Below, piece by piece: positions 1 through 53,141 of a stretch of 64,000 nt of DNA (within the stretch, counting starts at the first letter, position 1; each line of letters begins with the position of its first letter). Both the position numbers and the translations under genes were made by a program. A model generated the notes under the pieces. That model was given only the letters and a program-made list of their open reading frames with translations. It was not told where the DNA came from and made no database searches. The stretch spans positions 434,001-498,000 of the forward strand of contig NIVC01000571.1 in NCBI GenBank assembly GCA_002269645.1, written 5' to 3'. This DNA comes from Macrostomum lignano. Taxonomy: Eukaryota.

Positions 1-800
1 GCAGGTGCGATGCCGCTCTCAGAGACTTGGTGACCCAGGTACGTGACGCTCCGGTAGGCAAAGAAGCTCTTGCCTGGGTTCAGCTTCAGCTTGGCAGACC
101 GCAGTCGATGCAGCACCTTGGACAGTGACTGAACGTGGTTCTCAAAGTCCCTGTTGAAGATGATCAAGTCATCAATGTACGCGATGACCTCCTCCCAGCT
201 CAGGCCGGTCATAATGAGCTCCATCATTCGCTGGTACGTCGCAGGCGCGTTGCACATGCCGAATCCCATTTTGCGGAATTGCATCAGGCCGCTCGGAGTG
301 TAGAACGCTGTCAACGGCCGATCCTCCTCTCTGACCTCCACCTGAAGGAAGCCTTGGCGCATGTCGATCGTAGAGAACCATGAGCAGCCAGCCAAGGAGT
401 CGAGCGCTTGGTGCAAATGCGGCAGCGGGTGGGCGTCCTTCACTGTGAGGTTGTTCAGCGCCCGCCAGTCTACACAGACTCGGATGTCATTATTCTTCTT
501 TCTGACGATTATCAGGTTGCTCGCCCACGGGCTGGTGGAGGGCTCGATGACGCCGTGTTGTCGCATCTGCTCCAGCTTCTCGTCCACTTGCCTCCTGAAG
601 GCGTGAGGCACCCGCCGAGGCCGTTGGCGAATCGGGCGAGCGCCGTCGTCCAGCTCAATCTTGTGCTGCGCTGCGCTGCTCGTACCAACGTCGAACTCAT
701 GGACTGAGACCACGTCGGCAAATGCCCTCAGCAGCATTGCTAAACGGTTGCTGTCCTCCTCCGGCAGCTCCGGATTGATGTTGAACTGGTCTGCGGGGCC
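1..800 (-). CDS. Gypsy pol, reverse transcriptase portion
   Basis: Manual minus-strand translation gives ...IEPSTSPWASNLIIVRKKNNDIRVCVDWRALN...KDAHPLP...FSTIDMRQGFLQV...MGFGMCNAPATYQRMM...VIAYIDDLIIF...VTYLGH. It is open to the window edge and absent from the ORF track because it has no start codon here. Confidence 0.95.
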
Positions 801-874
801 TTCTTCTTCTTTTCTTCTTCTTTTCTTCTTCCCTTTTGTCGCCGTGTGGCATGGGCAGTCTTCGGGGTCTCTCG

Positions 875-3800
875 TCAGCAGTCCTTGCAGGTGCGTAGGT
901 GGCGTGCCATGTTCGTCGCGGCGAGCGTGCGCCCACAACCTTCGCATTGTTTAGTTTTCGCTCGGTACTTCCTCTCACCTCCCGGGGACCGTGTCTCTTC
1001 CCGCGTTGTACCGCAGGTTTTGCGGTGTCTCGCTAGGTTTGATTTCGATATTTCTCGAGCACAGGTCGCGCATTTTACGCGGTTTCCTCCCACTTCTCTC
1101 TCTCCTCCGCAGACCTTTACGTGGTTTAACCACGTTGCCTCTTGTCTGAACTGCTTCTCGCATTTTACGCACTTGAACGTTACTGGTTCTTCTATCTTGC
1201 GGTGCATCCTCTTTTGGTGAATGGTCAGGCCTGCTTTGCTTTTGCACTCCTTTCCGCAGTCTTCGTATTCACATATGAATGTTCTTGTTTTCTCCTGTTT
1301 CTGTTTGTCGTTCCTTTCGATGTTCCTTGCTTCTGCCTTCTTTCCTTGTTGTTGTTCCCATCTCTTGAGGTGGCTTATGCGTTCTTGAACAATTTTACGC
1401 CATTTCTGGCGGTCGGTTGCTAGTCTCTCTGTCATTTCCGGCTCGATCCCTGCTTGGCGTAGTAGTCGCTTCCAATATTCGATGGTGTTACCTTTTCTCT
1501 TACGTGTTTTCCTTATCTTTTCCAGACCCTTGTACCATCCGAGAACCATCTTTTTCGTTAGGCGGTTCGCCTCCATGCGAAGCACATGTCCGATGCGGAT
1601 CAGGTGGCTCTTCTCAATCTTTGTTTGTATTGTCGTTACTTCTAGTTCATTGCGAATGTCCTGCATATTTATTCCTTTTGCCTCCATTTCCCTTAGTGGT
1701 TCCATTTTCCTGCTGCTCCATATCTGCCGGTAGATTCGGTCCATGAAGCTTTGTAGTTGCTTCGTTTCTGACTTCAGGAATGGGCGTATGTTCGCGTGGA
1801 ATAGCAGGATGCTCTCTATACAGGCTTCAACGACCTTCGCTTGCGTGGTCTTTTTCAACCTGCACTTGATGAAACGTCTACGGATCGTCGACCAGCATCT
1901 CGCCGCTTTTTGCAATCTCTGGCTCGTGTCGTACTTCGTGTCCGTCCATGATCCTAGCATGCGTACTTTTCCTCCCTCTCTGGTTCCGAATATCATTACC
2001 TCTTGCTTTTTGTCGTTCGTTTGTTCTTCGAATCCTGCCATTATTTCTTTCGTCGACTCTAGGCCCGCGCTGAGTTCCTTGCGGTTGCCTAGGATAGTGG
2101 TGTCGTCTGCAAATAGAACTGTCCTGATGAGTTCGGTTTTGGTCTCCGAGTTTGGCTGGTTTCTTCGCTGAGGTGGGAGTGAGCTTCCTGGGAGGTATGT
2201 CCATTCAATTCCACATATTTGCTCTTTCTCCTTTGCTGTTTGTGTTCTTTTCTCCTCAACTTCCCTGATGCATGCTTGGTGAAAGATATTAAATAGAACT
2301 GGGGATGTCGGGCATCCTTCGCGTAGTCCTCTTTCTGGCAACCACGATTCACTGGACTGTTTCTTTCCTTTCACTTTATACTCCGTGTATTCATGAAGGT
2401 CCTTCAATTTGTCAATCACTTTTTCCGGCAGGGCGTACTTCTGTAGTATCCCCAAAGTACCGGTTTGCTGACTCTGGGGTATGCTTTCCGGAGGTCTAGG
2501 AGAAATGCTAGTTGGTCTTCTTCGAGGTTGCAGTCTCCTACGGCGTTTTTCGCCTGGCGGTATTCTGTTATGTCTTCTTGTATACGGATGATTATCTGGG
2601 TGCTGTCTGCCGTTGATCGGTTGGCTCTAAAGCCATTCTGATTGTCGTCAAGCGCCCCGACTCGTTCTGCCCAGTCCCGTAACCTTGAGGCGATGATTCT
2701 TGCCAATATGCGACTTAGCATCGGCAGGAGGCACACTCCTCGGTAATTGTTAAGGTCGGTCCTGTCCCCTTTCTTAAAGAGTGGTATGATAAGGCCTACC
2801 TTCTCACTGGCTTCCCAGTGCCACGCTCGGTGTTCGTATAGATATCGGATTCTTTCCCGGACAGCTTCTCTAACTTCTTCGGGCCCTTCCTTAAGGTAGC
2901 GCAGGCGTACTTCGTCCTCTCCCGGGCTTTTGTCCCTCATTTCTTTGATTGCTCTATCGATCTCCGCGTCGCTCGGTGTGTCGCTGAGTTCTTTGTATTA
3001 TTCCTTGCTAATGGTTTTACTTCCCGCTGGGGTTTTGATGTTTCTAATGAGCTCTGCGATCTTCTCCGGTTCGTTCTCCATTCTTGTTTTCTGTATGTTT
3101 TCTAGGTGTTCCTTGAATTCTTGTTCGTCGATATTCGTGCCTCTTTCACTATTGTTGAAGGCCGTGCCTATTTTGTCTAGGAGTCGGAGTTTGTCGTATA
3201 CCAACGCTATTTGTCCTTTGTCTGCTGCGTTTCTACATTCGTCGGCCAGTTGATCCCACCACTGTTCTTCCCACTCCCTCACCGTGTTTTTTGGGTTTTT
3301 CATGTTTTTCTCAGCGCCTCTTCTGCTCTCTTCGTCTGCTCGCTTCTCGGGCCGTGGGTTTCCCTGGCCCTGTTCCTCTGTTGGAGTATTACAGCCAATT
3401 CTTCGTGCAGCCTCTTTAGGTCGTTTTCGTGGGATGACATCCACGGATTTGTTTGTCGGTTCGCTGGTCCGCAAATCGACTTTGCACTCTCCACGATTAT
3501 TCTTTGCACTTCTGTCCATGGTGCTTGTTCTCTTTCCTCCTTGTTCTCCTTCCACGTTTGCATTCTTCTTTCCACCTCTTTTTTGAATTTCGTTGCGTTC
3601 TCTTCGTCATAGAGCTTCTTCCAGTTGATGCCTTGATTACTTCTCCTGTACAGTCTTTTTGCGTTCGGTCTTTTTCCTGTGTCGGCTACGCCCCTGATTA
3701 TTAATGTCTTTGGGATGTGGTCGGACAGTGCACAGCCGTTGTGATTTTTTATTGATTTTATGATTTTATTACGGTCCTCTGCTCTTGTCGCGAATCCATC

Positions 3801-4745
3801 AATTTCGTACCATCTTCCGTTACTTGGGTTCTGCCATGTCCCTCGTCGTTTTTGGTGGTAGAACGAGTTTACCCATGCGAGGTCGTTGGATGTCAACCAG
3901 TTCACTAGGTCTTCTCCCTGCTTATTTGTTGTCTCCAAGCCAAATTTCCCTCTGTTTGATGTTGGTTTTTCTGAGTTTTTGCCAATCTGAGCATTGAAAT
4001 CTCCTCCTATAATCAGTGGTCTTGGTGTCTTATCCACATGGATGTACCGTTCAATCTCATGTCGGAGTGCAGCCAGCTCTGTTTCGTATTGTTGACTGCC
4101 CATGACCGGACTATAGATGCTGATGATTGATAACTTGTAGATTTCAAGCATAACCGCTCTCTCGCACCTCGTTACCTTTGCTCCGCTCTCTCTCCAGATG
4201 GTGTGCCATTCGTCATTGAGTACAATTCCCGCTTTCCTGCTGTGAATCAGGTGGACATTCTTTCCTTTTTGGTGGTAGCTTCTTATTCCATCGTCTGGTG
4301 CTCTAAGTTCTGAGATTAGAGTGATTTGCCAGTTCTCTGTCATTATTTTCTTCGTTATCTCTCCGAAGCGTCTGTCCAGGATGTTAGCTCTCTGCACGTT
4401 CCATGTTGTGATTCGAGTCTCCTCTTCAAGTCTCTTCTGTCTGCGGTTCTTCTCGTTTTGCTTCCTTCTTGTCCTTCTTTCTTTCCGTCTTTCATTTCTC
4501 CTCTTCTTCCATTCACTTGTCTTTTTTTTTGGTTTGCGCTCGTTTTTATTCGTTTTTGTTTGTTTTTTAGGTGCTTCCTGTGCTCTCGGTCCCGGATTCT
4601 TTTCAATAGTTCTTAGTCTTATTCTTATTATTTCTGCAAGGTGTCTCTTCTTCTTCTTGATGTTGGTCCTGCTTGTTCTCTTTCTCTTCTCATCCCCGTC
4701 TCGACTGTGGTTGGCCTGGTGTTGTGCGGCAGCTAGGTCGGCCAT
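875..4745 (-). pseudogene. RTE ORF (~1,290 aa when joined): basic leader, 2A-like motif, AP endonuclease, RT, four zinc fingers
   Basis: APE motifs TTWNVQ, LISEL, IYSP, GGDFNAQIG, IDGF, SDH. RT motifs NYRGVCLL, QNGFR, DLRKAY, GLREGCPTSPVLFN, LFADD. Broken by homopolymer frameshifts at ~3305-3309 and ~2450-2453 and an in-frame TAA at 2998-3000. Confidence 0.9.
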
Positions 4746-4825
4746 GGCTACCTGCCGTTGCTGAAAAGGGCCGGTTGCACAGTTCCGACTTGCGTCGTGG
4801 GCTGGGCTCCGTGCCGGATTCCCTC

Positions 4826-4902
4826 TGTGTCTTCTTTGCCAGGATGCGTGACCGCATCCTGTCCGCTTGCCACCTCGGGAAGGTGAGACACAATCGGTAA
4901 GC
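4826..4902 (-). ncRNA. HDV-like self-cleaving ribozyme fold at the RTE 5' end
   Basis: GCTTACC-GATT-GTGTCTC-ACC-TTCCCGA-GGT-GGCAAGC-GG-A-CAGGATGCG-GTCA-CGCATCCTG-GCAAA-GAAGACACA. P1 has 6/7 pairs; P2, P3, L3, P1.1 GG, a 9-bp P4 and J4/2 GCAAA are in HDV order. G1 coincides with the insertion junction. Confidence 0.85.
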
Positions 4903-5694
4903 TGCGGGGCCTCGCCACTCGTGCACGTCCTCGTCCTCGTCGATAACCTCCGCGCTCTCGAAGGTGCCGATGCTCTGGTTGGAGAACAGCGTGACCGGGC
5001 TGCAGCTGAGGTTGCACACCTGAACCGGAATCTTGCCGCTCTCTGAAGACACCGCGAACACGTGGCCGGGCAGCACTCCGATTCTGTCGATGAACTCCTG
5101 TGACGGCTCGAAGATGCCATGTGCCTGCTTGGTCTCGGTCGTCACGTCCACCACTTTAACTGACCTTGGCGGTACCACGACGGCGCCCTGAACTCTGGCG
5201 ATGATCACTGTGGGTACCAAGCAACAAGACAGCGGGCCATCTTGCTTGGAATCGCAGTTACTGAACGGAACCGCCTCACCATCAAATGCGACTGTCTTGG
5301 CACCCTGGTCGATGCTGAACTGCGATCTGGCCGCCTTGCTCACGAAATCCATCCCCAGGATGAAGTTTGGGCGAATCCCTCTGACCACCAGCACGTCCAT
5401 TTGTCTGCGCAGCTGATGACTGAGTCGCACCGTAATGCTCACGCTTCCTAACAGCTCGAGAACGGAGCCGTCCACGGACACAGGCCTGACATCTGCCGGC
5501 TTCAGCTCGCAGCGACAATCCAGCTCTCTCAAAGCAACGTCGCTGATCAGCGAGGTCTGCGCTCTGGTGTCCAGCAGCCAGCGGCACGGCTTGCCGTTTG
5601 CCTCTCCAGGTATAAAAATAGCATGAAGCACGGGATTGCTCCTTGGGGTTGGTGTGGGTCCCGCACCCGTTGCACCAACCCTTAAAAGTTTCCC
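4902..5694 (-). CDS. Gypsy pol N-terminal part (aspartic protease)
   Basis: WLLDTRAQTSLIS protease-like motif and FILGMDFV flap region. It joins in frame to the RT once the RTE insert and one TSD copy are removed (EWRGPA|DQFNINP). Confidence 0.85.
5628..5694 (-). promoter_or_regulatory. -1 ribosomal frameshift signal (gag-pol)
   Basis: Slippery GGGAAAC at 5688-5694 just before the gag stop, 6-nt spacer, then a perfect 9-bp stem GGGTTGGTG/CACCAACCC. Pol is in the -1 frame. Confidence 0.85.
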
Positions 5695-6503
5695 GGAGCC
5701 TTCGATGGGCAGACAGAGGCCTTGTGCCCCCGCCCAGAGCACTTGTGGCAGATGATCGGACCCGGCTGTTTCTCTCGCTGCTGACATTGCGCTGCACGGT
5801 GTCCGAGCTGGCCGCAGTTGAAGCAGCCGCCTCCTCGCTGTTGACGGCGACGCCGAGTGTCGGTACCCGACTGTACGCTGACCCTCGCGATGAGCTCCTC
5901 CATGCGTTTCTCCAGTCGGTCCAGGCGGTCCTCGCTTGGTTCTGCCGATGATGTAGCGCTGACGGCTCCGACTGCCGCCACCGACTGTCGCCCAGCCAGC
6001 TCCTCCAGCCGAGCCGCCCGCTTCAGCAGAGTCTCCAGGCTGCAGGTCTCTGCGTCCTCTGCCTTAAGCAGGTTGTCACGAATGTCGGCCTTGAGCAGCT
6101 GCAGAAGCTTGAAGCGCACATCTCGGTCTCGCTGAGCAATTGAGTCCTCCGGTCTGGCTTTCTGGTGTAGCAGCTTCAGGTTAAAGCAGAGCTCACGCAG
6201 TGTCTCGGCATCTCCACGTTTCCTTGCGTAGAAGTCGCTCATGGCCTTAAAGCTGTCGGCTTCGCCTCCATAAAACTTTGTGAGGTCCTCCTTTATACTT
6301 TTAAAACTTTTTTGTCTTGTCTCGGCCAGGTCCCAGACGACAAGTTGGGCTTCTCCCGTGAGCAGCAGCTTCACCTTCGACGCTGAGGTCGCGTCGTCCC
6401 ATTTTGCATCGTTGGCGAATTCCTCAAAGATGCGCAGCCACTTTCTCACGTCAGTGCCGTCTGTTCCACTGAACTTTGGCGGTAGAAGAGTGTTCTGGGC
6501 CAT
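5682..6503 (-). CDS. Gypsy gag
   Basis: MAQNTLLPPKFSGTDGTDVRKWLRIFEE... (retrotransposon capsid-like); CFNCGQLGHRAAQC and CHKCSGRGHKASVC zinc knuckles. Confidence 0.92.
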   Translation of the reverse strand: MAQNTLLPPKFSGTDGTDVRKWLRIFEEFANDAKWDDATSASKVKLLLTGEAQLVVWDLAETRQKSFKSIKEDLTKFYGGEADSFKAMSDFYARKRGDAETLRELCFNLKLLHQKARPEDSIAQRDRDVRFKLLQLLKADIRDNLLKAEDAETCSLETLLKRAARLEELAGRQSVAAVGAVSATSSAEPSEDRLDRLEKRMEELIARVSVQSGTDTRRRRQQRGGGCFNCGQLGHRAAQCQQREKQPGPIICHKCSGRGHKASVCPSKAPGNF

Positions 6504-6525
6504 GAGTGCACTTGCACTGGGTTCT

Positions 6526-6536
6526 CGCTGCCACCA
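6526..6536 (-). promoter_or_regulatory. Primer binding site (tRNA-Leu-like)
   Basis: TGGTGGCAGCG lies 1 nt after the LTR end and is complementary to the 3' end (...CGCUGCCACCA) of metazoan tRNA-Leu. Confidence 0.8.
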
Positions 6537-6537
6537 A

Positions 6538-6747
6538 TGTAAGAGCCGAGAATTTAGAGTAAGTTTACGAAGTATATTTTGATGCACGATAATTTACGAG
6601 CGATTAAATAGTCAGCGATGATAGATCGATTAAAGTGACTCCCCCAACTGGGGTGGTGGGTATGTACAGAGAAGAAAGCGAGATGCAAGTACATATACTA
6701 ATAGAGCAGCCCCCACCCCGACGGCCCAAACCAAACGCAACCCTACA
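6538..6747 (-). repeat. Gypsy 5' LTR (210 bp)
   Basis: Bounded by TGTA...TACA and followed directly by the PBS. The partner LTR is outside the window. Confidence 0.8.
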
Positions 6748-7230
6748 ATTGAATAAGGTCATTGAGCATTGGATGAGGTCAGTAAGCATTGGATGTGGTC
6801 ATTGAGCATTGGATGTGGTCATTGAGCATTGAATGTGGTCCTTGAGCATTGGATGTGGTCATTGAGCATTGGATGAAGTCATTGAACATTGGATGTGGTC
6901 ATTGAGCATTGGATGTGGTCATTGAGCATTGGATGTGGTCATTGAGCATTGAATAAGGTCATTGAGCATTGGATGTGGTCATTGAGCATTGGATGAAGTC
7001 ATTGAACATTGAATGTGGTCATTGAGCATTGGATGTGGTCATTGAGCATTGGATGTGGTCATTGAGCATTGGATGTGGTCATTGAGCATTGGATGAAGTT
7101 ATTGAATATTGGATGTGGTCATTGAGCATTGAATGTGGTCATTGAGCATTGGATGTGGTCATTGAGCATTGGATGTGGTCATTGAACATTGGATGTGGTC
7201 ATTGAGCATTGGATATGGTCATTGAGAATT
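6748..7230. repeat. 20-bp minisatellite (ATTGAGCATTGGATGTGGTC)n
   Basis: About 24 tandem copies. Confidence 0.95.
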
Positions 7231-7252
7231 GGCTGCCGTCATTAGGTCTCAC

Positions 7253-10200
7253 CGGACTTCCAGCTCGTCAGCCAGCAGGCAGTCTTGGCGGAACGTGGCG
7301 CCCAGTCGGACAGGGCTTTGCGGCAGCGGTGCCTCCGAAGTTGTAAGAAAGGCGGAGAACTTCAAAAGGGTGGCGGTGGCGGTAAAGCTGAAGTGGACAG
7401 ACACTGAAAGACAGCAGCAGCCCATCCCCAGACACAGCAACCCTCACAGACACAGCAGTCCTTACAGACACAGCAGTCCTCACCGACACAGCAGTCCTTA
7501 CAGACATAGCAGGCCTCACAGACACAGCAGCAACCCCCCAGAAGACAGCAGCGCTCACCAAAAGCAGAGTCGCGTCTCCTTCCGCCCGGATCTCGGCGGT
7601 CACTTCGTTGATTTCGGGCAGCCGCAGCATCTCGCCGATGTCCACAGGGCAGCCGGCCTCGGCGGCGCAGAACTGCAGCGCCACGGAGCTGCGGACGGGC
7701 TCGGTTGTGGGGGCCGTCAGGGTGACGTTGAGCACCGGCAGCCTGTCGGCAAAGCCGGAGCCTTTCTGGCGCACCATGGCGAAGGCGCGGTAGCGAGTGG
7801 GGGCAGCGGAGTCGGCCGAGTCAGCAAACCGGAGACTGACGGTCGCCGCCGCGCCCGCCGACAGCTCCAGCGGCTGCCCAGGCGGAGGCGGCGGAGGCGG
7901 CGGCTGCCCGCCATCGGCGACTGGGCGCGGCTGGCCGGCAGCTGCCTGCGGCGCCTCCCAGGCCGGAGCGATGGCGGCGCGGGGGCGGCCGGTGCCGGCG
8001 ACGCCTGGCAGGCGGTAGCGGGCGATGCGGGACTCCAGCATCCGCGGCGACCAGCGGCTCGGCGGAATGGTGTACACGGCTCTCTGCGGTGCGGGGAGGC
8101 GGCTGCAACTGATTTGTGCGATCACACTGTCACACAGCACTGTCACACAGTAGTGCCATAGCCTCAGCACTGTCACACACCACTGTCACACAGCACTGTC
8201 ACACAGTAGTGCCACAGCCTCAGCACTGTCACACACCACTGTCACACAGCACTGTCACACAGTAGTGCCATAGCCTCAGCACTGTCACACACCACTGTCA
8301 CACAGCACTGTCACACAGTAGTGCCATAGCCTCAGCACTGTCACACAGCACTGTCACACAGTAGTGCCATAGCCTCAGCACTGTCACACACCACTGTCAC
8401 ACAGCACTGTCACACAGTAGTGCCATAGCCTCAGCACTGTCACACAGCACTGTCACACAGTAGTGCCATAGCCTCAGCACTGTCACATAGCACTGTCACA
8501 CAGTAGTGTCATAGCCTCAACACTGTCACACAGCACTGTCACACAGTAGTGCCATAGCCTCAGCACTGTCACACAGCACTGTCACACAGTAGTGCCATAG
8601 TCTCAGCACTGTCACACAGCACTGTCACACAGTAGTGCCATAGTCTCAGCACTGTCACACAGCACTGTCACACAGTAGTGCCATAGTCTCAGCACTGTCA
8701 GACAGCACTGTCACACAGCACTGTCACACAGCACTGTCACACAGTAGTGCCATAGCCTCAGCACTGTCACACAGCACTGTCACACAGCACTGTCACACAG
8801 CACTGTCACACAGCACTGTCACACAGGCGGCCTCACTAGGCTGAGCCCGGGCCCAGACAGCAGCTGCAGGCGGATCTCCGTGTCGGCCGCCTTCAGCGCC
8901 AGCTCTGCCGGCAGGCCGGGGGCGCTGCTTCTCTTGGCGGGGTGCCGGCAGGGCTTGGAGTTCGGGCACGCGGGCAGCTGGAACTCCAGGCTGTTGTCGC
9001 CCACCCGCAGGACCACTGTGTGGCCTCCAGGCCCGTCGCTGACGAAGTCCAGCAGCAGGAAGCGGCCCCCAGGGCGGGTAACGCTCAGCGCCAGGACGAC
9101 TTCCGAGTCCGCCGTCAGAAACCGCTGCTCGGCTGAGGACTCCTGCAGGATGCGCGTGTGGGAATGTCCAGGATTAGTCACCGTTCAGGGCTGAGGACAG
9201 CATGAGGGCTACAGCAAGAGGGCTAAGGCCGGAGGGCTAAGGCCTGAGGGCTAAGGCCTGAGGGCTACGGCCTGAGGGCTACGGCCTGAGGGCTACGGCC
9301 TGAGGGCTACGGCCTGAGGGCTACGGCCTGAGGGCTACGGCCTGAGGGCTACGGCCTGAGGGCTACGGCCTGAGGGCTACGGCCTGAGGGCTACGGCCTG
9401 AGGGCTACGGCCTGAGGGCTACGGCCTGAGGGCTACGGCCTGAGGGCTACGGCCTGAGGGCTACGGCCTGAGGGCTACGGCCTGAGGGCTACAGCATGAG
9501 GGCTACGGCCTGAGGGCTACGGCCTGAGGGCTACGGCCTGAGGGCTACGGCCTGAGGGCTACAGCATGAGGGCTATGGCCTGAGGGCTACAGCATGAGGG
9601 CTACGGCCTGAGGGCTACGGCCTGAGGGCTACTGTCTGAGGGCTTGCTACTTTCCAGTTTGCGCAGTTTCTATGAGGTTCTGGAAGCACCCTATCGAATC
9701 CCGTGCAGCCTCACCAGCCTGAACTTGTCGTCCAGCATGGGCAGCTCGAACTCCGAGCAGACAACGAAGTCGTTGGCGGCTGAACTCGGGCAGGGCGGCG
9801 GGCTGACAGCCGCGCAGGCCTGGCCGGTCAGCAGCTCGGCCGGCGTCAGCTCCAGCCAGTCGATCAGCAGCGCCTCCTGGGCGAGGCGGCCGTCGGGGTC
9901 GGCCAGCTCCAGCCGCAGCGTGAGGTTCCCGGCGTCCGGCAGCTCCACGGTGGCCGTGGAGGCGGCGCCGGCATCGGCGGGAGCTCCGACGGGCACGCTG
10001 GCCAGCTGCCGGCCGCCGACCGCGGACACACGCAGGGCGAAGCCGGCGGCGGTGTCGTTGGCGCCGGCGGGCTGGAAGCCGGCTGCCAGGTAGCGGATGG
10101 CGAGGCGCTGCGGCCCCGGCCCTGGGCTGACGGTCGCGAGTTCGAGCTCCACGGCAGGCTGCGGCTTGTCGAGCGGCACGTAGCCGAGGTAGGAGAAGCC

Positions 10201-13200
10201 GGGGAACTGCGTGGCGTTGAAGGCGTAACGCAGCTGCGGCGCCGTCCCGTTGGCGCCGTTGCGGGCGTCGGCCGGCGACGATGGGATTCGAGCGGAGGTC
10301 TCGAACTCGATTCGGTGCTGTCCGAGGCCCGGCCAGAAGTGCTCGGACGCTGGCCGGTCGCACAGGCGGCCAGCGACAGAGTCGTTTAGGCAGGCGCAGA
10401 CGCTGCCGACGCCGTCGGGCGCGGCGACGCAGTTCGGGCCGAGGGAGCCGGCGGTGTCGCAGCCGCAGGGCAGGCAGCCGAGCCAGCGGCCGGCCGCCAG
10501 GTCCCGGGAGCCGCTGGGGCAGCGGGAGCAGCCGGAGCCCACAGCCAGCGGCTTGCAGGTGCAGCTGACAGCGGGGGAGCGCGGGTGGACGGGGCGTTTG
10601 AGTGCAGCGGTGATTATTGCATCTGATTGGTGTCCGGGTGTGTGATTGGTGTCCGGGTGTGTCTGATTGGTGTCCGGGTGTTTCTGATGGGTGTCCGGGT
10701 GTTTCTGATGGGTGTCCGGGTGTGTCTGATCGTGTCCGGGTGTGTGATTGGTGTCCGGGTGTGTGATTGGTGTCCGGGTGCATCTGATTGGTGTCCGGGT
10801 GTGTGATTGGTGTCCGGGTGTGTCTGATTGGTGTCCAGATGTGTCTGATTGGTGTCCGGGTGTGTCTGATTGGTGTCCGGGTGTGTCTGATTGGTGTCCG
10901 GGTGTGTCTGATTGGTGTCCGGGTGTGTCTGATTGGTGTCCGGGTGTGTCTGATTGGTGTCCGGGTGTGTCTGATTGGTGTTCGGGTGCCTCACCGCCCA
11001 GTCTCCAAGTCGCAGTCGGCCAGCTCGCCGGCCACGCCCTCAGCCGTGCAGTTGCAGCTCTGGCAGCCCTCCGGATTGTCGCTGCTGAGGTCCCAGAAGC
11101 CGGGGCGGCAGCGCTGGCAGCGGGGGCCAACGGCGTTGGGCTTGCAGATGCAGGGTTTGGGCGAGTTCTGAATGCACAGGCCGTTGGGGAACTTCGGGAA
11201 CACCTTCGAGCCGCGGGTGTCGCAGGCGCAGGCTGAAGGGAAGCGGCGGCTGTCATGTGAGCTGCTGCTATAAACACAAAACCCCCATAGACACAGCAGT
11301 AAACAGGCGCAACCCCCTTAAAAACAGCAGTAAACAGCCTCAAGCCCCCATAAACACAGCAGTAAACAGGCGCAAGCCCCCATAAACACAGCAGTAAACA
11401 GCCGCATTCCCCATAAACACAGCAGTAAACAGCCGCATTCCCCATAAACACAGCAGTAAACAGCCGCACTCCCCATAAACACAGCAGTAAACTGCCGCAA
11501 ACTCCCATAAACACAGCAGTAAACAGCCGCACTCCCCATAAACACAGCAGTAAACAGCCGCACTCCCCATAAGCACAGCAGTAAACAGCCGCACTCCCCA
11601 TAAACACAGCAGTAAACAGCCGCACTCCCCATAAACACAGCAGTAAACAGCCGCACTCCCCATAAACACAGCAGTAAACAGCCGCACTCCCCATAAACAC
11701 AGCAGTAAACAGCCGCATTCCCCATAAACACAGCAGTAAACAGCCGCAAGCCCCCATAAACACAGCAGTAAACAGCCGCACTCACGCTCGCACAGCGGGA
11801 AGTTCCGGTAGCCGATCCGGCAGGAGTCGCAGTTGGCGCCGCGCACGCGGGCCCGGCAGCGACACTTGCCGGTCAGCGGGTCGCAGGCGCTCCCGGCTTC
11901 GCTGCCGGCGGCGCTGCACCGGCAGGGCTGGCACTCCACCGTGCCGTTGCCATGGTCACGCAGCAGCGTGAAGCCCGGGGTGCAGCGGGAGCAGTCCCGC
12001 CCGGCGTAGCCCTGGTGACAGAAGCAGCGGCCGTTGTCGGGGTCGCAGCCGGCGGTCCGGTCGGAGCCGGCCGGGTTGCAGCTGCAGCCGGTGCAGTTCG
12101 GGAAGCCCCAGCGGCCGTGCCCGCACTCGGAGCACTGCGGCCCGCCGAAGCTGGGCTCGCAGAAGCAGGCGCCGGTGGCGGCGCTGCACACCGAGGCGTT
12201 GGTACCATCCGGGTCGCAGTTGCACTCTGCGGGCGAGCGGCCCCGAAAGTTACTGAATCTCACCCGATATGTTTCTGAATCTTATCTGCCCTTTACCGAA
12301 TCTTATCTGCCCTTTACCGAATCTTATCTGCACTTTACCGAATCTTATCTGCCCTTTACCGAATCTTGTTTGCACTTTACCGAATCTTGTCTGCACTTTA
12401 CCGAATCTTGTCTGCACTTTACCGAATCTTATCTGCACTTTACCGAATCTTATCTGCACTTTACCGAATCTTGTTTGCACTTTACCGAATCTTATCTGCA
12501 CTTTACCGAATATTATCTGCACTTTACCGAATCTTGTCTGCACTTTACCGAATCTTATCTGCACTTTACCGAATCTTGTCTGCACTTTACCGAATCTTGT
12601 CTGCACTTTACCGAATCTTATCTGCACTTTACCGAATCTTATCTGCCCTTTACCGAATCTTGTCTGCACTTTACCGAATCTTATCTGCACTTTACCGAAT
12701 CTTGTCTGCACTTTACCGAATCTTGTCTGCACTTTACTGAATCTTACCTGCACTTTACCGAATCTTGTCTGCACTTTACTGAATTTTGTCTGCACTTTAC
12801 CGAATCTTATCTGCACTTTATTGAATTTACATGCACCGTCCTATCCCCCAGCCCCAGGCCGCACTCACTGAAGCAGCTGCCGCGGTACATGAAGAAGCCG
12901 GTGTCGCACTGGTCGCACAGCGGCCCCGTGTAGCCCGGCTTGCAGTCGCACGAGCCGCTGTCGGGGTCGCAGACTTCGCTTGTGGCTCCGTTGAGAGAGC
13001 AGTTGCACTCTGCAGCAGGTGCGCGTGTGACTCAGGGTGACTCAGTGACTCATTGTATGCTAGCCTGAGTGACTCATTGTGTGCTTGCCTGAGTGACTCA
13101 TTGTGTGCTTGCCTGAGTGACTCATTGTGTGCTTGCTTGAGTGTCTCATTGTGTGCTAGTCTGAGGCTCATTGTGTGCCTGCATGAGGGACTCATTGTGT

Positions 13201-16200
13201 GCTTGCCTAAGTAATTCATTGTATGCTAGCCTGAGTGACTCCTTGTGTCCTATTCTGAAGGGACTCATTATGTGCTTGCCTAAGTGACTCATTGTGTGCT
13301 TGCTTGAGTCACTCATTGTGTGCTTGCCTGAAGGACTCATTGAATGTGCTTGCCTGAGTGTTACTAGGAGTGGCGCATTGTGCACCATTCGGTGTGACTC
13401 ATTGTGTAATACTATGTACCAACTCTTATCAAGTTGCCAAAAAGCTCCAAATAAAAGTGCAGAGTGCGCCGGTGACTCACTCTGGCAGTCGGGAAAGCCG
13501 GTGAATCCGTCAGCGCAGGTGTCGCATTTGTCACCGCCGAACGTCGGCCTGCACGCGCAGCGGCCGTCAGCGGAGTCGCAGCGGCCGGCCACAGTGCCGA
13601 CCGGGTTGCAGTCGCAGGGTTCGCAGGCCGGCGGGTTCGTGTAGCCGGCGGCGCAGCTGGACGGGGGCGGGAAATCCCGGGGTTGTAAAATTGGCGGGGG
13701 CTTGCAGGGGACAGTTGAAGGGCAGATCAAAAGTACAGTTGAAAGGCAGATCAAAAGTACAGTTGAAGGGCAAATCAAAAGTACGGTTGAAGGGCAAATC
13801 AAAAGCACAGTTGAAATCTCACAGCTCGCAGTTAAGCCCGGTGAAGTTCTTCTTGCACAAGCACTCGCCGTAGCCATCCTTGCACTCGCCGCTGGAGATC
13901 TGCGTGCTGCAGTTGCACTCTGCGGGAGCAGGTTTTTCGGGAGGCACTTCATGAAAAGTTTGCCCCAGAGCCGCGAACCGAAAAACAGCAAAGCACAATT
14001 TGCGACGATGAGGCCTCACACAGGGTGTACAGCGGCCCTGACTTTCTTATCGTCAGGCATGTACATCTCTGTGCCTCAGGGATGGCCCTCATCTAACGGA
14101 ATCGAACTTGGCATTCGAGCTGCATTCCCAAAGGGGATCTCATTGTGCGGCCACTCACTGACGCAGGAGTCGGTGCGGTTCCACGCCCGGCCCCATGGGT
14201 GGAAGAAGCCCGGGATGCAGGAGCGGCAGTTCAGGCCGGTCGTGTTGTCGCTGCAGTTGGCGCAGACGCCGCCGCCCTCGTAGATGCCGTCGAGGTCCAT
14301 GGAGAGCCGCTTGCGGGCCACCTCCGGGTCGAAGGTGCAGGTCTGGCTGTGGCCGTGGCAGTTGCACTCTGCGGCGGATGTGGATTGGGGATTGGGGATT
14401 GTGTATTGTGGGTTGTGGATTGTTGATTGTGGTTTTTGGATTGCGGATTGTGTATTGTGGGTTGTGGATTGTGTATTGTGGTTTTTGGATTGTGGATTGT
14501 GGATTGTGAATTGTGGATTGCGGATTGTGGATTGTGTATTGCGGATTGTGGATTGTGGATTGCGGATTGTGGATTGTGGATTGTGGATTGTGTATTGCGG
14601 ATTGTGTATTGTGGATTGTGTATAGCGGATTGCGGATTGCGGATTGTGGATTGTGGATTTTGTATTGTGGATTGTTGATTGTGTATTGCGGATTGTGGAT
14701 TGCGGATTGTGGATTGTGGATTGTGTATTGCGGATTGTGGATTGTGTATTGCGGATTGTGAATTGTGTATTGCGGATTGTGGATTGTGTATTGCGGATTG
14801 TGAATTGTGTATTGCGGATTGTGGATTGTGTATTGCGGATTGTGGATTGTGTATTGCGGATTGTGGATTGTGTATTGCTGATTGTGGATTGTGTATTGCG
14901 GATTGTGGATTGTGTATTGCGGATTGTGGATTGTGTATTGCTGATTGTGGATTGTGTATTGCTGATTGTGGATTGTGTATTGCGGATTGTGGATTGTGGA
15001 TTTTGTATTGTGGATTGTTGATTGTGTATTGCGGATTGTGGATTGCGGATTGTGGATTGTGGATTGTGTATTGCGGATTGTGGATTGTGTATTGCGGATT
15101 GTGAATTGTGTATTGCGGATTGTGGATTGTGTATTGCGGATTGTGGATTGTGTATTGCGGATTGTGGATTGTGTATTGCGGATTGTGGATTGTGTATTGC
15201 TGATTGTGGATTGTGTATTGCGGATTGTGGATTGTGGATTGTGGATTGTGGATTGTGGATTGTGGATTGTGGATTGTGGATTGTGGATTGTGGATTGTGG
15301 ATTGTGGATTGTAGTATGTGGATTGTGGATTGTGGATTGTAGTTTGTGGATTGTTGATTGTAGATTGTGGATTGTTGATTGTAGATTGTGGATTGCGGAT
15401 TGTGGATTGTGGATTTTGGTTTGTGGATTGCTGATTGTGGATTGTGGATTGTGGATTGTGGATTGTGGATTGTGGGTTTGGGATTGTGGATGCTGGTTAA
15501 AAATCTTCAACCTCTTGATCTCCTAAATAATCCCACAGAAATCCCACAGAGATCCCACTCTCCGCTTACTTTCGCACGGCTTGCCGGCCTTCCACGGCTT
15601 CTGTGGGTGCGTGGCGGCGCAGCGGTCGCAGGTGTCGCCCTCGACGCCCTCGATGCAGCGGCACTTAAAGTCGTCGGCGAGGCTGTCCAGCTCACAGGAG
15701 CCCGCCAGGCCGTTGCAGTAGCAGTGGCCGCTGACCTTCAGCAGGCTGACGCTGTAAAAGTACTGCGGGGCGAGGCGGCGGGCGGATCTACAGGGCTAGA
15801 TTCTAGAAGCTAGAGTGAGAGGATCTAGGGACCGGAGCTATAAATCTAGAGACCGGAACGATAGATCTCGGGACCGGAGAGATAGATCCAGCGACCGGAT
15901 CTGGGGACCGGAACGATAGATCTAGGGACGGGAGCGATAGATCTAGGGACCGAAGCATGGGAGCTAGGGACTGGAGCATGGGAGCTAGGGACTGGAGCAT
16001 GGGATCTAGGGATTGGAGCATGGGATCTAGGGACCGGAGCATGGGATCTAGGGACGGGAGCATGGGATCTAGGGATTGGAGCATGGGATCTAGGATTTGG
16101 AGCATGGGATCTAGGGATTGGAGCATGGGATCTAGGATTTGGAGAATGGGATCTAGGGATTGGAGCATGGGATCTAGGGACCGGAGCATGGGATCTAGGG

Positions 16201-42978: not shown

Positions 42979-44922
42979 CTCTCTTTCGGTGCCTGTCCTG
43001 AAAGGGGGCCCCCAGGGCGGCGTTCTCACCCCCCGTTCTCTGGAACATGGTCATGGATGAGTTGCTTTGCAGTGATCTCCACGACCCCATTCTCAAGGTG
43101 GGCTATGCCGATGATGTGACCGCGATATGCGCGGGCCCCTCGGTTGATACCATCAGAGACCTTCTGCAGGGCTTTCTGGGACGAGCGGAGCGTTGGGCAG
43201 ACCAATGTGGCCTTAGACTCTCAGAGTCGAAAACCACAGCAGTCATGTTTACCAACAAACTGCTCTGGACCATTAAGCCCCTCACCCTCTATGGAAAGAA
43301 TATTTCCATGGAGAAGCAGGTCCGCTGCCTGGGCCTCACTCTGGACCACAGGCTTAACTGGACTCCGCACATTCAAACTAAAGCCAAAAAAGCCCTGGCT
43401 GTACTGGCTCAGATCAGGCGCGCCGTGGGCACCACCTGGGGCTCACCCCAGGAAGCTGTGGTGGATTTACACTGCCATCATCCGCCCCTCGATCAGTTAC
43501 GCCAGCCTCGTGTGGGCTAGCGGCCTGAGCGTCAAGAGCAACCTCGACGCTCTCCACAAAATCCAGGGCAGAGCCTGCCGCATGACTATGGGCGCTCCAC
43601 CCTCTACTCCTTTTGAAGGCATGAATGCCTTCCTCTGTGCCCCTCCTTTGGATATTTATATCAAAGGAGAGGCGGCGAAGGGCACCCGGCGTCTTCTGGA
43701 TGCTGGGGTGGCCTTCAAGAAAGTGCGGGCCTTTAAGAAGCGGTCGCTTATCCCGCACTCTGACCTCTGCCTCAAGGCTCTCGAGGAGTGTGGCGGGCTC
43801 AACATCCTCACGGACTCGATCCCAGCCACCCTTCTCCTGAGCCAAAGGTATAAGGTCACCATTCAGCCTCGACACGAGGCGAGTGACAGCTGGAGCGACT
43901 CTGAAGTCCACTGTTACACTGACGGCTCTATGAGGCATGGTCTTTCAGGCTTCGGAGCTTGCGTCTTCTTCAAGGGAGAAGTGGTGTGGAGCTACTCCCA
44001 GCACACTGGGCTCAACTCCAGTGTTTTTCAGAGCGAGGTGCTTGCCATCAGCTCCTGCGCGGCAGAGCTGCGCCGAAGGCAGCTTAGCGGCCGGAAATTT
44101 ATTTTTCACTCTGACAGCCAAGCAGCCCTTCGGGCCCTCTGCCGCAGCACCGCCAGCTCCAGGTCCGTCCTGGACTGCAACACCCAGCTCAACGGGCTTG
44201 CGCTAGGCAACCAGGTGGAGCTCAGATGGATCCCGGGCCACGCCGGCTTCCCCGGCAACGAGCGCGCTGACCTGCTGGCCAAGGCTGGCTCCGCCGGCGC
44301 GCTATTGGGGCCGGGCCCGGGTGCCCCCATCCCCGCCTCGGTGATCAATTCCCGCGTTAAGCGCTGGGCTGACTCCGAGCATCTCCGCAGGTGGCACGAC
44401 ACCCGGAATTGTAGGCAATCCCGTGCTGCCGTCCCCTGCCCCTCTCCTCTCCTGCGTAGAGCCCTCCTCAGGCTCAACCGCAGAGACCTCAGAGCAGTTA
44501 GCATGGCCCTCTCCGGGCATGGCTGCTTCTCTCGCCACCGCTTCCTTCAGGGCCAAGTACCCGAGGAGCGGTGCCCCTTCTGCCGCTCAGGCAGTGAAAA
44601 CGCCGAGCATTTTATCTGCCACTGCCCGGTTTTCACCAGGGCCAGGCTCACTCACCTCGGGCCAAACCCGGTTCTCTCCGACGTTTGCAGGCCCGAGAGC
44701 ATCCCGCTGCTCGCCCGGTACCTCAGGGACACCGGACGAGCTGATTTCTTCCCCACCGCCGGTGAGGAGGACCGCGCTGCAGGCGAGACCGACGGGTCCC
44801 CCTGAGCGACACCACTTCAACGGAAGTCGTTGGTCGCCAGGGGCTAGCGGAATGGGCGGTCTCCTCCGCCTCCTCGCTGCATCCGCCGGACGCCCCCTGC
44901 AGCTAAGTCAAGTAAGTCAAGT
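42979..44922 (+). mobile_element. 5'-truncated LOA/R1-like non-LTR retrotransposon (RT C-half, RNase H, CCHC-like finger)
   Basis: 12-bp TSD CACCCCATCTTC at 42967-42978 and 44923-44934. Motifs PQGGVL..LWNMVMDELL, GYADD, YTDGS, FQSEVLAI, SDSQAAL, WIPGHAGFPGNERADLLAK, CPFC...EHFICHC; (TAAGTCAAG)-like tail; homopolymer frameshifts at ~43030 and ~43440. Confidence 0.92.
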
Positions 44923-50466: not shown

Positions 50467-51032
50467 CTCTCACAGACTGGTCTTCGTGGCTCCACACGTG
50501 GACTCACTTAGTCAGGTATTTTTTGTTTAGTGGAATGTCTGACTAGTCCACGGCCATTGGGTGTTCAAACCCGTGTCAAGATGGTCTCTGCATTTCATCC
50601 CAATTCCCCAACAGTCCATATAGTGAATGAAATTGTACAGCATGTTTCACCGAGCCTGACAAATGTGCAGCTTTATGAAAATATGGGTCTTTGTACGAGC
50701 GTACATTGGATCATAGAGATCTAGAACTAGAACCTGGAGTCTTCCCGGAACTCCTTTGGCCCCGTACGCTAGTAGGCTGACTGGGGAAACCCCACACAGC
50801 CGCACATGCTTTTGCCTTTGAACAAATATTTGGCTATGAGATGCTCGCTAGAAACTAATATCGGATTTTCAAGTATGGAAATGAAACGAATATTGTATTT
50901 TTGTATTTTTTAGATAATTAATAAAAGCACACACATTCTTATTTATTGCATGCAAAATGTATAATTATGGCAACGGCCTTACAGTTTTGCATTGAATGAG
51001 GATGGATAAATCTGCATTCGCATATTACCAGC

Positions 51033-51070
51033 GGGGGCGCTTCATAAGATCTAAATTTCACAACGCCAAA
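51033..51070 (+). mobile_element. Solo TIR of the same MITE family
   Basis: GGGGGCGCTTCATAAGATCTAAATTTCACAACGCC matches the 50050-50466 TIR. Confidence 0.75.
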
Positions 51071-51075
51071 AACAG

Positions 51076-52846
51076 TTGTCTGTTGTCTGCTATTGGTCTG
51101 TTGTCTGCTATTGGTCTGTTGTCTGCTATTGGTCTGTTGTCTGCTATTAGTCTGTTGTCTGCTATTGGTCTGTTGTCTGCTATTGGTCTGTTGTCTGCTA
51201 TTGGTCTGTTGTCTGCTATTGGTCTGTTGTCTGCTATTGGTCTGTTGTCTGCTATTGGTCTGTTGTCTGCTATTGGTCTGTTGTCTGCTATTGGTCTGTT
51301 GTCTGCTATTGGTCTGTTGTCTGCTATTGGTCTGTTGTCTGCTATTGGTCTGTTGTCTGCTATTGGTCTGTTGTCTGCTATTGGTCTGTTGTCTGCTATT
51401 GGTCTGTTGTCTGCTATTGGTCTGTTGTCTGCTATTGGTCTGTTGTCTGCAATTGGTCTGTTGTCTGCTATTGGTCTGTTGTCTGCTATTGGTCTGTTGT
51501 CTGCTATTGGTCTGTTGTCTGCTATTGGTCTGTTGTCTGCTATTGGTCTGTTGTCTGCTATTGGTCTGTTGTCTGCTATTGGTCTGTTGTCTGCTATTGG
51601 TCTGTTGTCTGCTATTGGTCTGTTGTCTGCTATTGGTCTGTTGTCTGCTATTGGTCTGTTGTCTGCTATTGGTCTGTTGTCTGCTATTGGTCTGTTGTCT
51701 GCTATTGGTCTGTTGTCTGCTATTGGTCTGTTGTCTGCTATTGGTCTGTTGTCTGCTATTGGTCTGTTGTCTGCTATTGGTCTGTTGTCTGCTATTGGTC
51801 TGTTGTCTGCTATTGGTCTGTTGTCTGCTATTGGTCTGTTGTCTGCTATTGGTCTGTTGTCTGCTATTGGTCTGTTGTCTGCTATTGGTCTGTTGTCTGC
51901 TATTGGTCTGTTGTCTGCTATTGGTCTGTTGTCTGCTATTGGTCTGTTGTCTGCTATTGGTCTGTTGTCTGCTATTGGTCTGTTGTCTGCTATTGGTCTG
52001 TTGTCTGCTATTGGTCTGTTGTCTGCTATTGGTCTGTTGTCTGCTATTGGTCTGTTGTCTGCTATTGGTCTGTTGTCTGCTATTGGTCTGTTGTCTGCTA
52101 TTGGTCTGTTGTCTGCTATTGGTCTGTTGTCTGCTATTGGTCTGTTGTCTGCTATTGGTCTGTTGTCTGCTATTGGTCTGTTGTCTGCTATTGGTCTGTT
52201 GTCTGCTATTGGTCTGTTGTCTGCTATTGGTCTGTTGTCTGCTATTGGTCTGTTGTCTGCTATTGGTCTGTTGTCTGCTATTGGTCTGTTGTCTGCTATT
52301 GTTCTGTTGTCTGCTATTGGTCTGTTGTCTGCTATTGGTCTGTTGTCTGCTATTGGTCTGTTGTCTGCTATTGGTCTGTTGTCTGCTATTGGTCTGTTGT
52401 CTGCTATTGGTCTGTTGTCTGCTATTGGTCTGTTGTCTGCTATTGGTCTGTTGTCTGCTATTGGTCTGTTGTCTGCTATTGGTCTGTTGTCTGCTATTGG
52501 TCTGTTGTCTGCTATTGGTCTGTTGTCTGCTATTGGTCTGTTGTCTGCTATTGGTCTGTTGTCTGCTATTGGTCTGTTGTCTGCTATTGGTCTGTTGTCT
52601 GCTATTGGTCTGTTGTCTGCTATTGGTCTGTTGTCTGCTATTGGTCTGTTGTCTGCTATTGGTCTGTTGTCTGCTATTGGTCTGTTGTCTGCTATTGGTC
52701 TGTTGTCTGCTATTGTTCTGTTGTCTGCTATTGTTCTGTTGTCTGCTATTGGTCTGTTGTCTGCTATTGGTCTGTTGTCTGCTATTGGTCTGTTGTCTGC
52801 TATTGTTCTGTTGTCTGCTATTGGTCTGTTGTCTACTATTGGTCTG
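51076..52846. repeat. 18-bp satellite (TTGTCTGCTATTGGTCTG)n
   Basis: About 98 near-identical copies. Confidence 0.98.
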
Positions 52847-53141
52847 TGCCTGCCCCCCCTTCCCACACGGACTTCCCCCATTTTTCTCTATCCTCGCACC
52901 AGCCTACTGGGGTCCGGGTCCGAGCGCCTCCACTCAAGAGTTGCTATTCCAGATACTAGATCTAGATTTCCTTGGCTGGGCCAGCAGCTGAACGTACTTA
53001 GCTTTGCACAAAGGACTGCACAAATGTACAGCCAGAAAACCTGGGCTTTTGAGTTGAGCCCCCATTTTGCTTGAAAGTCCAATAGGACCACTTGTTCAGG
53101 GTTGCGATTGCAGAAAGATTCTTTCTCTGAGAATTGTAAAC

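Follow-up and report, generated by a model that had tools for sequence, protein, structure and literature searches.

The 77 nucleotides from position 4902 to position 4826 on the minus strand of the window (the whole stretch of 64,000 nucleotides of Macrostomum lignano DNA that was analysed) very probably form an HDV-like self-cleaving ribozyme at the 5' terminus of a non-LTR retrotransposon with a single ORF. The HDV-like fold at this site is real, and it is conserved and covaries in related elements; cleavage is predicted from the sequence. We have high confidence that the 5' element of the family is a ribozyme. In contrast, cleavage by the window copy itself is uncertain, with the chances about evenly divided, because its core deviates from the canonical one, its MFE fold contains a competing hairpin, and its ORF has decayed.

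HDV-like ribozymes comprise a nested double pseudoknot whose strands follow the order P1-P2-P3-L3-P3'-P1'-(P1.1)-P4-J4/2-P2' (PMC4908430). From 4902 to 4826 on the minus strand, the sequence reads GCUUACC GAU UGUGUCU C ACC UUCCCGA GGU GGCAAGC GG A CAGGAUGCG GUCA CGCAUCCUG GCAAA GA AGACACA. Direct reading and a descriptor scan find all helices and junctions in the canonical strand order, in agreement with an earlier note on this DNA (Table 1). J1/2 has three nucleotides (GAU), and the mismatch in P1 is A4898.C4869 (A5.C34 in ribozyme numbering). The pyrimidines of L3 (UUCCCGA) pair with GG, one pair being U.G, so both the L3 core and P1.1 are present; the G of L3 is marked as conserved in HDV-like ribozymes (PMC3774820). 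The MFE z-score of the window ribozyme is -3.15, and in the MFE structure P3 is lengthened to a 6-bp hairpin (CACCUU/GAGGUG), which would bury L3. Ribozymes of this class have their cleavage site where P1 begins, usually at a G that forms a G.U wobble. The window copy departs from the canonical core in having G1-C in place of G.U, the A.C in P1, and the U.G in P1.1.

Table 1. Features of the retrotransposon, its putative 5' ribozyme and its insertion site
Feature	Position	Strand	Basis or remark
Non-LTR retrotransposon, 4102 bp	801..4902	-	single copy in window
TSD, 5' copy GGCCCCGCA	4903..4911	-	adjoins G1
TSD, 3' copy GGCCCCGCA	792..800	-	adjoins 3' end of element
Element 3' end	801..843	-	motif GGCGACAAAAG, then GAA-rich tail
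Interrupted Ty3/gypsy, upstream part	4903..6587	-	gag zinc knuckle PF00098, aspartic protease PF13975; same orientation as LINE
Gypsy pol continuation (start of RT)	1..791	-	in frame with 4903-5787 after LINE removal
Putative HDV-like ribozyme, 77 nt	4826..4902	-	G1 = 4902; direct reading, RF02682, leave-one-out covariance model
P1, 5' strand GCUUACC	4896..4902	-	pairs with 4865-4871; 7 bp including one mismatch
P1, 3' strand GGCAAGC	4865..4871	-	G4902-C4865 closes predicted cleavage site
P2, 5' strand UGUGUCU	4886..4892	-	perfect 7 bp with 4826-4832; outer pseudoknot
P2, 3' strand AGACACA	4826..4832	-	partner of 4892-4886
P3 ACC/GGU, 3 bp	4884-4882 / 4874-4872	-	encloses L3
L3 UUCCCGA, 7 nt	4881-4875	-	within P3 (4872..4884)
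P1.1 GG	4863..4864	-	partners U4880 and C4879 of L3; U.G plus C-G
P4 hairpin	4840..4861	-	CAGGAUGCG (4861-4853), loop GUCA, CGCAUCCUG (4848-4840); perfect 9 bp
J4/2 GCAAA	4835..4839	-	candidate catalytic C = 4838
Leader motif UUUU..GCAACGG..UAGCCGACC..AGGC	4713..4767	-	nucleotide conservation across lineages; contains first ATG (4745-4743)
2A-like peptide TIEKNPGP	4587..4610	-	D to T relative to D[VI]ExNPGP consensus
AP-endonuclease (APE) domain	3711..4130	-	Pfam PF14529, E=6.4e-9
Reverse transcriptase (RT) domain	1955..2772	-	Pfam PF00078 on two ORF pieces; tblastn frames; frameshift near 2485-2449
C2H2-type zinc-finger cluster	878..1290	-	Pfam PF00096, E=2.7e-8
In-frame TAA stop	2998..3000	-	comparison with homologous proteins

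The boundaries of the element can be read precisely, and self-BLAST detects no second copy of this LINE in the window. The TSD is (A)GGCCCCGCA(G), 9 to 11 bp, and flanks 4902..801. Its terminal G could belong to the TSD or to the element, and G4902 is assigned to the element because every relative starts with GCU. With this one-base ambiguity settled, the earlier placement of G1 at the junction with the target duplication is confirmed. In silico excision of 4902..792 joins ...HEWRGPA to DQFNINPELPEEDS... in a 558-codon stop-free gypsy pol frame that runs into the RT. The flanking TSD copies and the restored gypsy frame thus establish the insertion together with the exact position of its 5' junction. 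Taken together, the TSD, the restored host ORF and the Pfam matches show that the ribozyme begins precisely where an element encoding APE and RT begins. Of the arguments that a single sequence can provide, this coincidence with a start defined by the TSD is the strongest. At the opposite end, the element terminates in ...GGCGACAAAAGGGAAGAAGAAAAGAAGAAGAAAAGAAGAAGAA, and the motif GGCGACAAAAG also precedes a (GAT)n tail in a relative (L015, 10424-10434; contigs other than the window are designated by L numbers).

Protein searches with the N-terminal and APE part of the element yield 7 relatives (28% to 41% identity), and searches with the RT yield 310 (up to 54% identity), among them sequences from Branchiostoma belcheri, Symsagittifera roscoffensis, Convolutriloba macropyga and many marine metagenome contigs. 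The contigs encoding twelve relative proteins were examined, and L008 and L011 were added by a DNA pattern scan. Wherever the 5' end of a relative was present, an HDV-like fold was found there. The same fold is located at L001:6098, L006:285, L015:6407, L003:4887 and L018:86, and also at L008:508 and L011:2433(-). Two folds each occur in L016 (6179 and 10238, in head-to-tail copies) and in L002 (5993 and 1376), and L005:536 is an aberrant version. In most loci, G1 is preceded by a microsatellite of (GAT)n or by the tail of a copy lying upstream. In L015 it is preceded by the RT of another LINE, and in L018 and L005 by unrelated DNA; AT-rich DNA is also among the types found. Because the upstream sequence is locus-specific and unrelated between lineages, homology among the relatives starts at G1. 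Several other contigs were set aside. L014 and L017 are uninformative regarding the 5' end, being 5'-truncated or starting inside the RT, and L007 is too short. L004 was excluded as truncated, since it retains P3, L3 and P1' but is missing the 5' strands of P1 and P2. The pattern-scan matches L009 and L012 look unrelated, and L013, a soil contig, carries a different, minimal HDV-like motif.

Rfam evidence by itself is weak, and is suggestive rather than decisive. Gathering mode gives zero matches in the whole window. In permissive mode on 301 nt, the better of two matches is to RF02682, with 23.3 bits against a gathering score of 44 and E=0.022; model positions 1-74 align at exactly 4902..4826. 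The HDV ribozyme is the sole Rfam family matched at the locus, below threshold, and with rescaling to the full window and to all of the 4227 families, the RF02682 E-value would be above 1. Among the relatives, permissive mode gives a single RF02682 match, in L008, which is likewise sub-threshold, and the best relative reaches 28 bits.

Searches designed for this fold are more specific to the site. A loose descriptor (G1; no more than one mismatch in each of P1 and P2; P3 of 3 bp; GG; a short P4 of at least 5 bp; NCAAA) has one match in the window, compared with 0.08 per Markov-1 randomised 64-kb window (both strands). When P4 was permitted to extend up to 170 nt, matches at 61724-61850 of the window and at three loci were discounted as chance, because the expectation is then 0.74 per window. 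Nothing would force a chance match to a descriptor onto the first base of an element. A leave-one-out covariance model (model R2), built from six relatives with the window sequence excluded, was applied to every position on both strands with filters off. This model matches 4902..4826 on the minus strand with identical ends at 43.4 bits (E=1.5e-9), and the runner-up in the 128 kb of strand has only 10.5 bits (E=0.5). A first covariance model, which included the window sequence, scored L015, a sequence outside its training set, at 50.5 bits. Thus, when the locus was searched as the earlier note had proposed, both the descriptor and the leave-one-out model arrived at the site, whereas the Rfam threshold was not reached. 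The Rfam scores might suggest a chance resemblance to the HDV fold; however, this is refuted by the exact position at the TSD junction, by the covarying homologous folds elsewhere and by the leave-one-out E-value, and we assign it almost no weight.

Compensatory changes had been named beforehand as a check on the stems, and among related elements they are found in 18 of 28 pairs. Fourteen sequences were aligned by hand and fitted to the structure, with N as filler and with only the basal part of long P4 stems included, and MAFFT preserved the register of this alignment. The 14 aligned sequences represent only about 6-7 independent lineages. Pairs were counted in P1, P2, P3, P1.1 and P4, pseudoknots included. 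Standard pairs occupy 97.0% of the 332 pair cells, compared with 75.1% in shuffles and with 32-43% in slid controls, in which the 3' partner is shifted by 1-3 columns. The changes noted above affect both sides of a pair, and the observed covariation score was reached by none of 500 shuffles. All seven pairs of P2 covary, as do five of the nine in P4, and P1 has both-side changes in four of its seven. For example, P2 is UGUGUCU/AGACACA in the window and GGUCUUC/GAAGAUC, UGACUUC/GAAGUCA, GGUUGGA/UCCAACC or AUACUUC/GGAGUAU in relatives; P1 is GCUUACC/GGCAAGC in the window, compared with GCUUGGC/GCCAAGY, GCUCGGU/ACCGAGC and GCUGUG/CACAGU.

Several core positions hardly vary across the same alignment. 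G1 is present in 13 of the 13 rows that contain its column; its partner is C in the window and eight others, and U (giving G.U) in four relatives. The GG after P1 is constant in 14/14 sequences, and the P1.1 cells are 100% paired, with one C-G pair in all 14 sequences and the other pair C-G in 9 or U.G in 5. The third base of L3 is an invariant C, and its fifth C and sixth G occur in 13/13 unmasked rows. J4/2 contains CAAA in all 14 sequences, which bears out the C at 4838 to which the earlier note had drawn attention, with catalysis as its candidate role.

The conservation could alternately reflect an internal promoter acting at the level of DNA, as does Pr77 of L1Tc, or a constraint on an N-terminal peptide, the RNA fold being incidental. 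The same 77 nucleotides serve as promoter and ribozyme in L1Tc (PMC3383444), and the region lies inside an open frame. However, compensatory changes on both sides of so many pairs are unexpected under either constraint, and a coexisting promoter could not explain the covariation. In addition, the lineages differ in frame and do not conserve the encoded peptides, and the lineage with a long P4 keeps the fold despite stops in all frames within the ribozyme. This explanation is therefore very unlikely.

The open frame itself was evaluated separately. The frame of the window copy is indeed open from G1 to the first ATG (4745-4743), as had been reported, but 37% of dinucleotide shuffles are also open over this interval, so in the window copy alone the feature is unremarkable and not significant. 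It becomes significant only across lineages. The frame containing NPGP is stop-free back to G1, over 90-106 codons, in the window, L001, L002, L006, L015, L018 and L005, and a 566-codon frame in L016a begins at nucleotide 2 of the ribozyme. In a conservative shuffle test that spans G1 to the last in-frame ATG before NPGP, the window has an open fraction of 0.37 and the other sequences have 0.02-0.08, with a product of 2e-8. An in-frame ATG occurs at ribozyme nucleotides 9-11 in L001, L016a, L002, L006 and L015, and in the window and some lineages the frame is open from G1 without an embedded AUG. In the long-P4 lineage, every frame is interrupted by stops within the ribozyme, and therefore an open frame through the ribozyme is not universal.

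Such frames are also compatible with a non-catalytic double pseudoknot whose only role is structural: to help initiate translation, to bind protein or to protect a 5' end that lacks a cap. In six lineages the ORF continues through the fold without a stop, with the embedded AUG in five loci, and in R2 the HDV-like folds reportedly also bind the protein of the element and function in the manner of an IRES (PMC6765202). However, little or no variation is seen in the features of the catalytic core (G1, the C and the C-G of L3, the GG, and the J4/2 CAAA), none of which a mere scaffold would need; nor would a scaffold account for a genomic 5' junction that coincides with the predicted scissile bond. 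Moreover, in known cases such roles come on top of cleavage. A purely structural function is thus improbable, and we continue to favor a self-cleaving ribozyme as the 5' element of the family.

Downstream of the ribozyme, the element is a single long frame for a basic leader, a 2A-like motif, APE, RT and C-terminal C2H2 fingers. In the relatives, the 2A motifs are DIEKNPGP, DIETNPGP, DVEKNPGP and HPNPGP. Comparison with homologous proteins reveals two frameshifts, near 3366-3300 and near 2485-2449, in addition to the TAA stop. The window copy is an old, coding-dead insertion; the claim that it is full-length holds for its extent (4902..801) but not for its coding frame, which is broken by these lesions. 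Pfam detects no RNase H in the window element or in 120 relatives. The names of the relatives are merely "hypothetical" or "uncharacterized," PDB searches give weak matches to L1 ORF2p and R2, and Pfam, PDB and protein names do not discriminate among LINE clades for the window element.

The decay of this copy makes it quite possible, although we lean slightly against it, that the family ribozyme is genuine and the window copy is a relic that cleaves inefficiently. This possibility overlaps the best explanation and concerns the window copy only. Two frameshifts and a stop indicate that the copy is decaying, the D of its 2A motif is lost, and its MFE fold has the competing hairpin over L3. Also, A.C occurs in P1 where the helices of L001, L002 and L015 are perfect. 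However, P2, P3, P4, the L3 core, the GG and J4/2 are all intact, and an A.C midway along a helix of 7 bp is a minor flaw. Elsewhere, a single P1 mismatch is conserved: in the long-P4 lineage, four diverged copies have A opposite A at position 4 of P1. Imperfection of P1 may therefore be compatible with activity, or these four copies may have lost theirs.

These features suggest a pathway, on the pattern documented for R2, R4, RTE and L1Tc, for an element whose layout is ribozyme, leader, 2A-like peptide, APE, RT, C2H2 fingers and microsatellite-like tail. The element would be transcribed within a longer RNA, possibly by read-through from the gypsy element of the same orientation in the window, and possibly from an upstream tandem copy or flanking DNA in the relatives. 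The double pseudoknot would then fold, and C4838 of J4/2 would catalyse scission immediately 5' of G1, so that the element RNA would start at its own first base with a 5'-OH. Because the cut would fall 5' of G1, no upstream sequence would be carried along, and target-primed reverse transcription to the end of this RNA would yield a genomic copy with G1 at its 5' junction. Head-to-tail arrays, as in L016 and L002, and a context of gypsy read-through, as for the window copy, are situations that call for such processing. Catalysis, co-transcription and a role in translation are predictions of this model, and the precise junction is the only direct trace that the proposed events leave in the DNA.

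The coding potential inside the ribozyme suggests a tentative extension of this model. The leader motif is located approximately 100-170 nt after G1 and is conserved though it is read in different frames; RNAalifold predicts a hairpin with compensatory changes in this motif, but with no net covariation energy. N-terminal 2A peptides are known in LINEs (PMC3708506), and the ribozyme and LINE literature covered contains no description of an initiation codon inside a LINE ribozyme. Perhaps the ribozyme also starts the coding region, as part of a coupled "cleave, initiate, skip" module for an uncapped LINE RNA, a proposal that we regard as possible but doubtful. The cleaved RNA would start 8 nt upstream of an AUG in J1/2-P2, and the ribosome would traverse the ribozyme and the leader with its second conserved RNA motif. 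The 2A StopGo sequence, approximately 90-105 codons in, might then separate the APE-RT protein from the leader peptide that the ribozyme encodes.

With this family, a widespread group of LINEs joins the elements whose 5' end is set by an HDV-like ribozyme, cleavage being predicted. The trimming of an RNA to its exact start is known from other elements and is predicted here for a family outside current RNA-family models. Because the family is invisible to the curated models of Rfam, such ribozymes are likely under-counted in genome annotation. The fold also supplies a precise 5' boundary for annotating elements of the family, and the relatives constitute a natural series of variants: G1-C or G.U, mismatched P1, an 80-nt insertion in P4, and an insertion in L3. 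The combination of a ribozyme, an open frame that starts inside it and a downstream 2A could offer a handle on the translation of uncapped, ribozyme-processed LINE RNAs.

Elements of the RTE clade typically have a single APE-RT ORF without further domains and a tail of short tandem repeats. The window element, called RTE-like in the earlier note, is compatible with this clade in its single APE-RT frame and simple-repeat tail, but its 2A-like peptide and C2H2 fingers are atypical; the comparison is by description and not by sequence. 2A sequences are listed in Rex1, Crack, L2, L2A, CR1 and Ingi, and not in RTE (PMC3708506). A 5'-terminal ribozyme and its function are documented for R2, R4, RTE and L1Tc (PMC3774820, PMC3185411, PMC6765202). 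The ribozymes of RTE, R4 and other LINEs form the precise 5' end of APE- or RLE-type elements and process co-transcripts, according to Ruminski et al. 2011 as cited in PMC3774820, and the ribozyme has been proposed to help translate the downstream ORF (PMC6765202).

R2 shares the 5' double-pseudoknot HDV-like fold, release from a co-transcript, and an ORF without a conventional capped leader (PMC3774820, PMC6765202). It differs in being specific to rDNA and in having a restriction-like endonuclease, and its cleavage site in many species lies upstream, within 28S sequence, with P1 formed in part by host bases. In contrast, P1 of the window element is wholly element-encoded, and its target is non-specific. 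RF02682, the HDV ribozyme of F. prausnitzii, and the genomic HDV ribozyme have the same order of helices and share U-N-C-N-C-G in L3, GG in P1.1 and C-A-A in J4/2; the base of P1 in the window ribozyme is G1-C, not G.U.

The architecture of the element is like that of Ingi/L1Tc except for RNase H, which L1Tc has, and this likeness is one of domain layout and not of clade membership. The tail of the window element is microsatellite-like, not poly(A), and its relatives are from amphioxus, acoels and marine metagenomes, not from kinetoplastids. L1Tc, of the ingi clade in Trypanosoma cruzi, shares the single ORF, N-terminal 2A, APE, RT and C-terminal C2H2 fingers (PMC6765202, PMC3708506), and also short TSDs and frequent tandem copies, according to sources that include PMC4035085 ref. 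14. Its ribozyme, L1TcRz/Pr77, comprises nucleotides 1 to 77 of the element, with cleavage 5' of +1 (PMC3185411, PMC3383444), and a role proposed for it is the release of individual copies from read-through transcripts (PMC3185411, PMC3383444, PMC6765202).

The 2A-bearing reading frame of the non-LTR retrotransposon (LINE) is free of stop codons back to the first base of its HDV-like ribozyme in six lineages (coordinates of all features are in the table). Conservative shuffle fractions for this open frame multiply to 2e-8, and the window copy by itself gives 0.37. In L001, L002, L006, L015 and L016a, one of two head-to-tail copies in L016, an ATG at ribozyme nucleotides 9-11 is in frame with 2A. 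The first ATG of the window copy derives from a 6-nucleotide ATGGCC insertion within a leader motif, UUUU..GCAACGGAGG..UAGCCGACC..CUCCUUAAA..AGGC. This motif has counterparts in L001, L002, L003, L004, L005, L015 and L018, is kept at the nucleotide level despite differing reading frames, and could fold into a hairpin whose loop is UAGCCRAC.

Coordinates of the LINE, its relatives and other features (L-numbers, contigs retrieved by protein homology or DNA pattern scan; G1, first base of ribozyme and element)
Feature	Position	Strand	Remarks
Stop-free frame	window 4902-4587	-	
Stop-free frame	L001:6098-6391		
Stop-free frame	L002:5993-6270		
Stop-free frame	L015:6407-6695		
Stop-free frame	L018:86-405		
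Stop-free frame	L005:536-865		
Stop-free frame	L016:6179-7880		
Leader motif	window 4713-4767	-	
2A-like "StopGo" motif	window 4587-4610	-	TIEKNPGP
2A-like motif, relative	L001:6368-6391		
G1 after (GAT)n or upstream tail	L016:6179 and 10238; L002:1376 and 5993; L003:4700-4886; L001:6010-6097		
3'-terminal motif	window 801-843	-	common to L015:10424-10500
Long-P4 ribozymes	L002:1376-1510; L003:4887-5034; L008:508-644; L011:2433-2297 (-); L010:1849-1710 (-)		
Aberrant ribozyme	L005:535-623		
Minimal HDV-like motif	L013:245-314, 748-807, 993-1048		
Ty3/gypsy element split by LINE	window 1-791 and 4903-6587	-	CCHC-knuckle gag, aspartic protease, RT
Two tandem-repeat arrays	window 6628-7347 and 8079-8881		periods 20-bp and 13/43-bp
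Further long ORFs	window 43144-44805 (+); 50996-53074 (+); 9691-11781 and 13146-13991 (-)		

Two ribozyme variants were found among the relatives. In one sub-lineage, P4 carries a structured insertion of ~80 nucleotides, an A.A opposition is conserved at P1 position 4, and all frames encounter stop codons inside the ribozyme. The L005 ribozyme has a P1 that is one pair shorter on both strands, a P3/L3 region extended by a ~25-nucleotide insertion and a P4 of just 3 bp, and an ATG spans its predicted cleavage site. The pattern scan and R1, our first covariance model of the ribozyme, also brought up a minimal HDV-like motif, present three times in a 1-kb soil metagenome contig (L013; Ga0066671_10274284). 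This motif, which has no relation to the LINE, comprises P1, P2, ACC-UCCGCGC-GGU, GG and a nearly absent P4, and its copies are spaced between small ORFs.

In relatives, G1 is directly adjoined by a (GAT)n microsatellite or by the tail of a preceding head-to-tail copy. This arrangement suggests that copies form tandem arrays or that the family inserts into its own tail repeats. Unlike these, the window copy has a non-repetitive target. It splits a Ty3/gypsy element whose pol frame is unbroken over the junction once the LINE is excised. On the minus strand, two tandem-repeat arrays lie 5' of the gag of this gypsy element, at higher coordinates. At the LINE 3' end, the terminal motif GGCGACAAAAG is followed by a simple-repeat tail, which is GAA-rich in the window and (GAT)n in relatives; this is probably the end recognized by the RT.

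Further long ORFs also occur in the window. The ORF at 43144-44805 has an RNase H domain and is probably another retroelement, and the two on the minus strand have laminin-type EGF domains. The ORF at 50996-53074 contains six LED repeats, and a search of a large protein collection found no homologue of it at E<=1e-10.

The 2A-like motif lies ~90-105 codons past G1 and 5' of the endonuclease, and is also found in L002, L003, L004, L005, L006, L015, L016 and L018. Variants among relatives are DIEKNPGP, DIETNPGP, DVEKNPGP, DVETNPGP and HPNPGP. In L016a the motif reads DIEKHPGP, and this N-to-H change is identical to that of a variant reported in 20% of L1Tc copies (PMC3708506); L1Tc is a Trypanosoma cruzi LINE that likewise has an HDV-like ribozyme and 2A.
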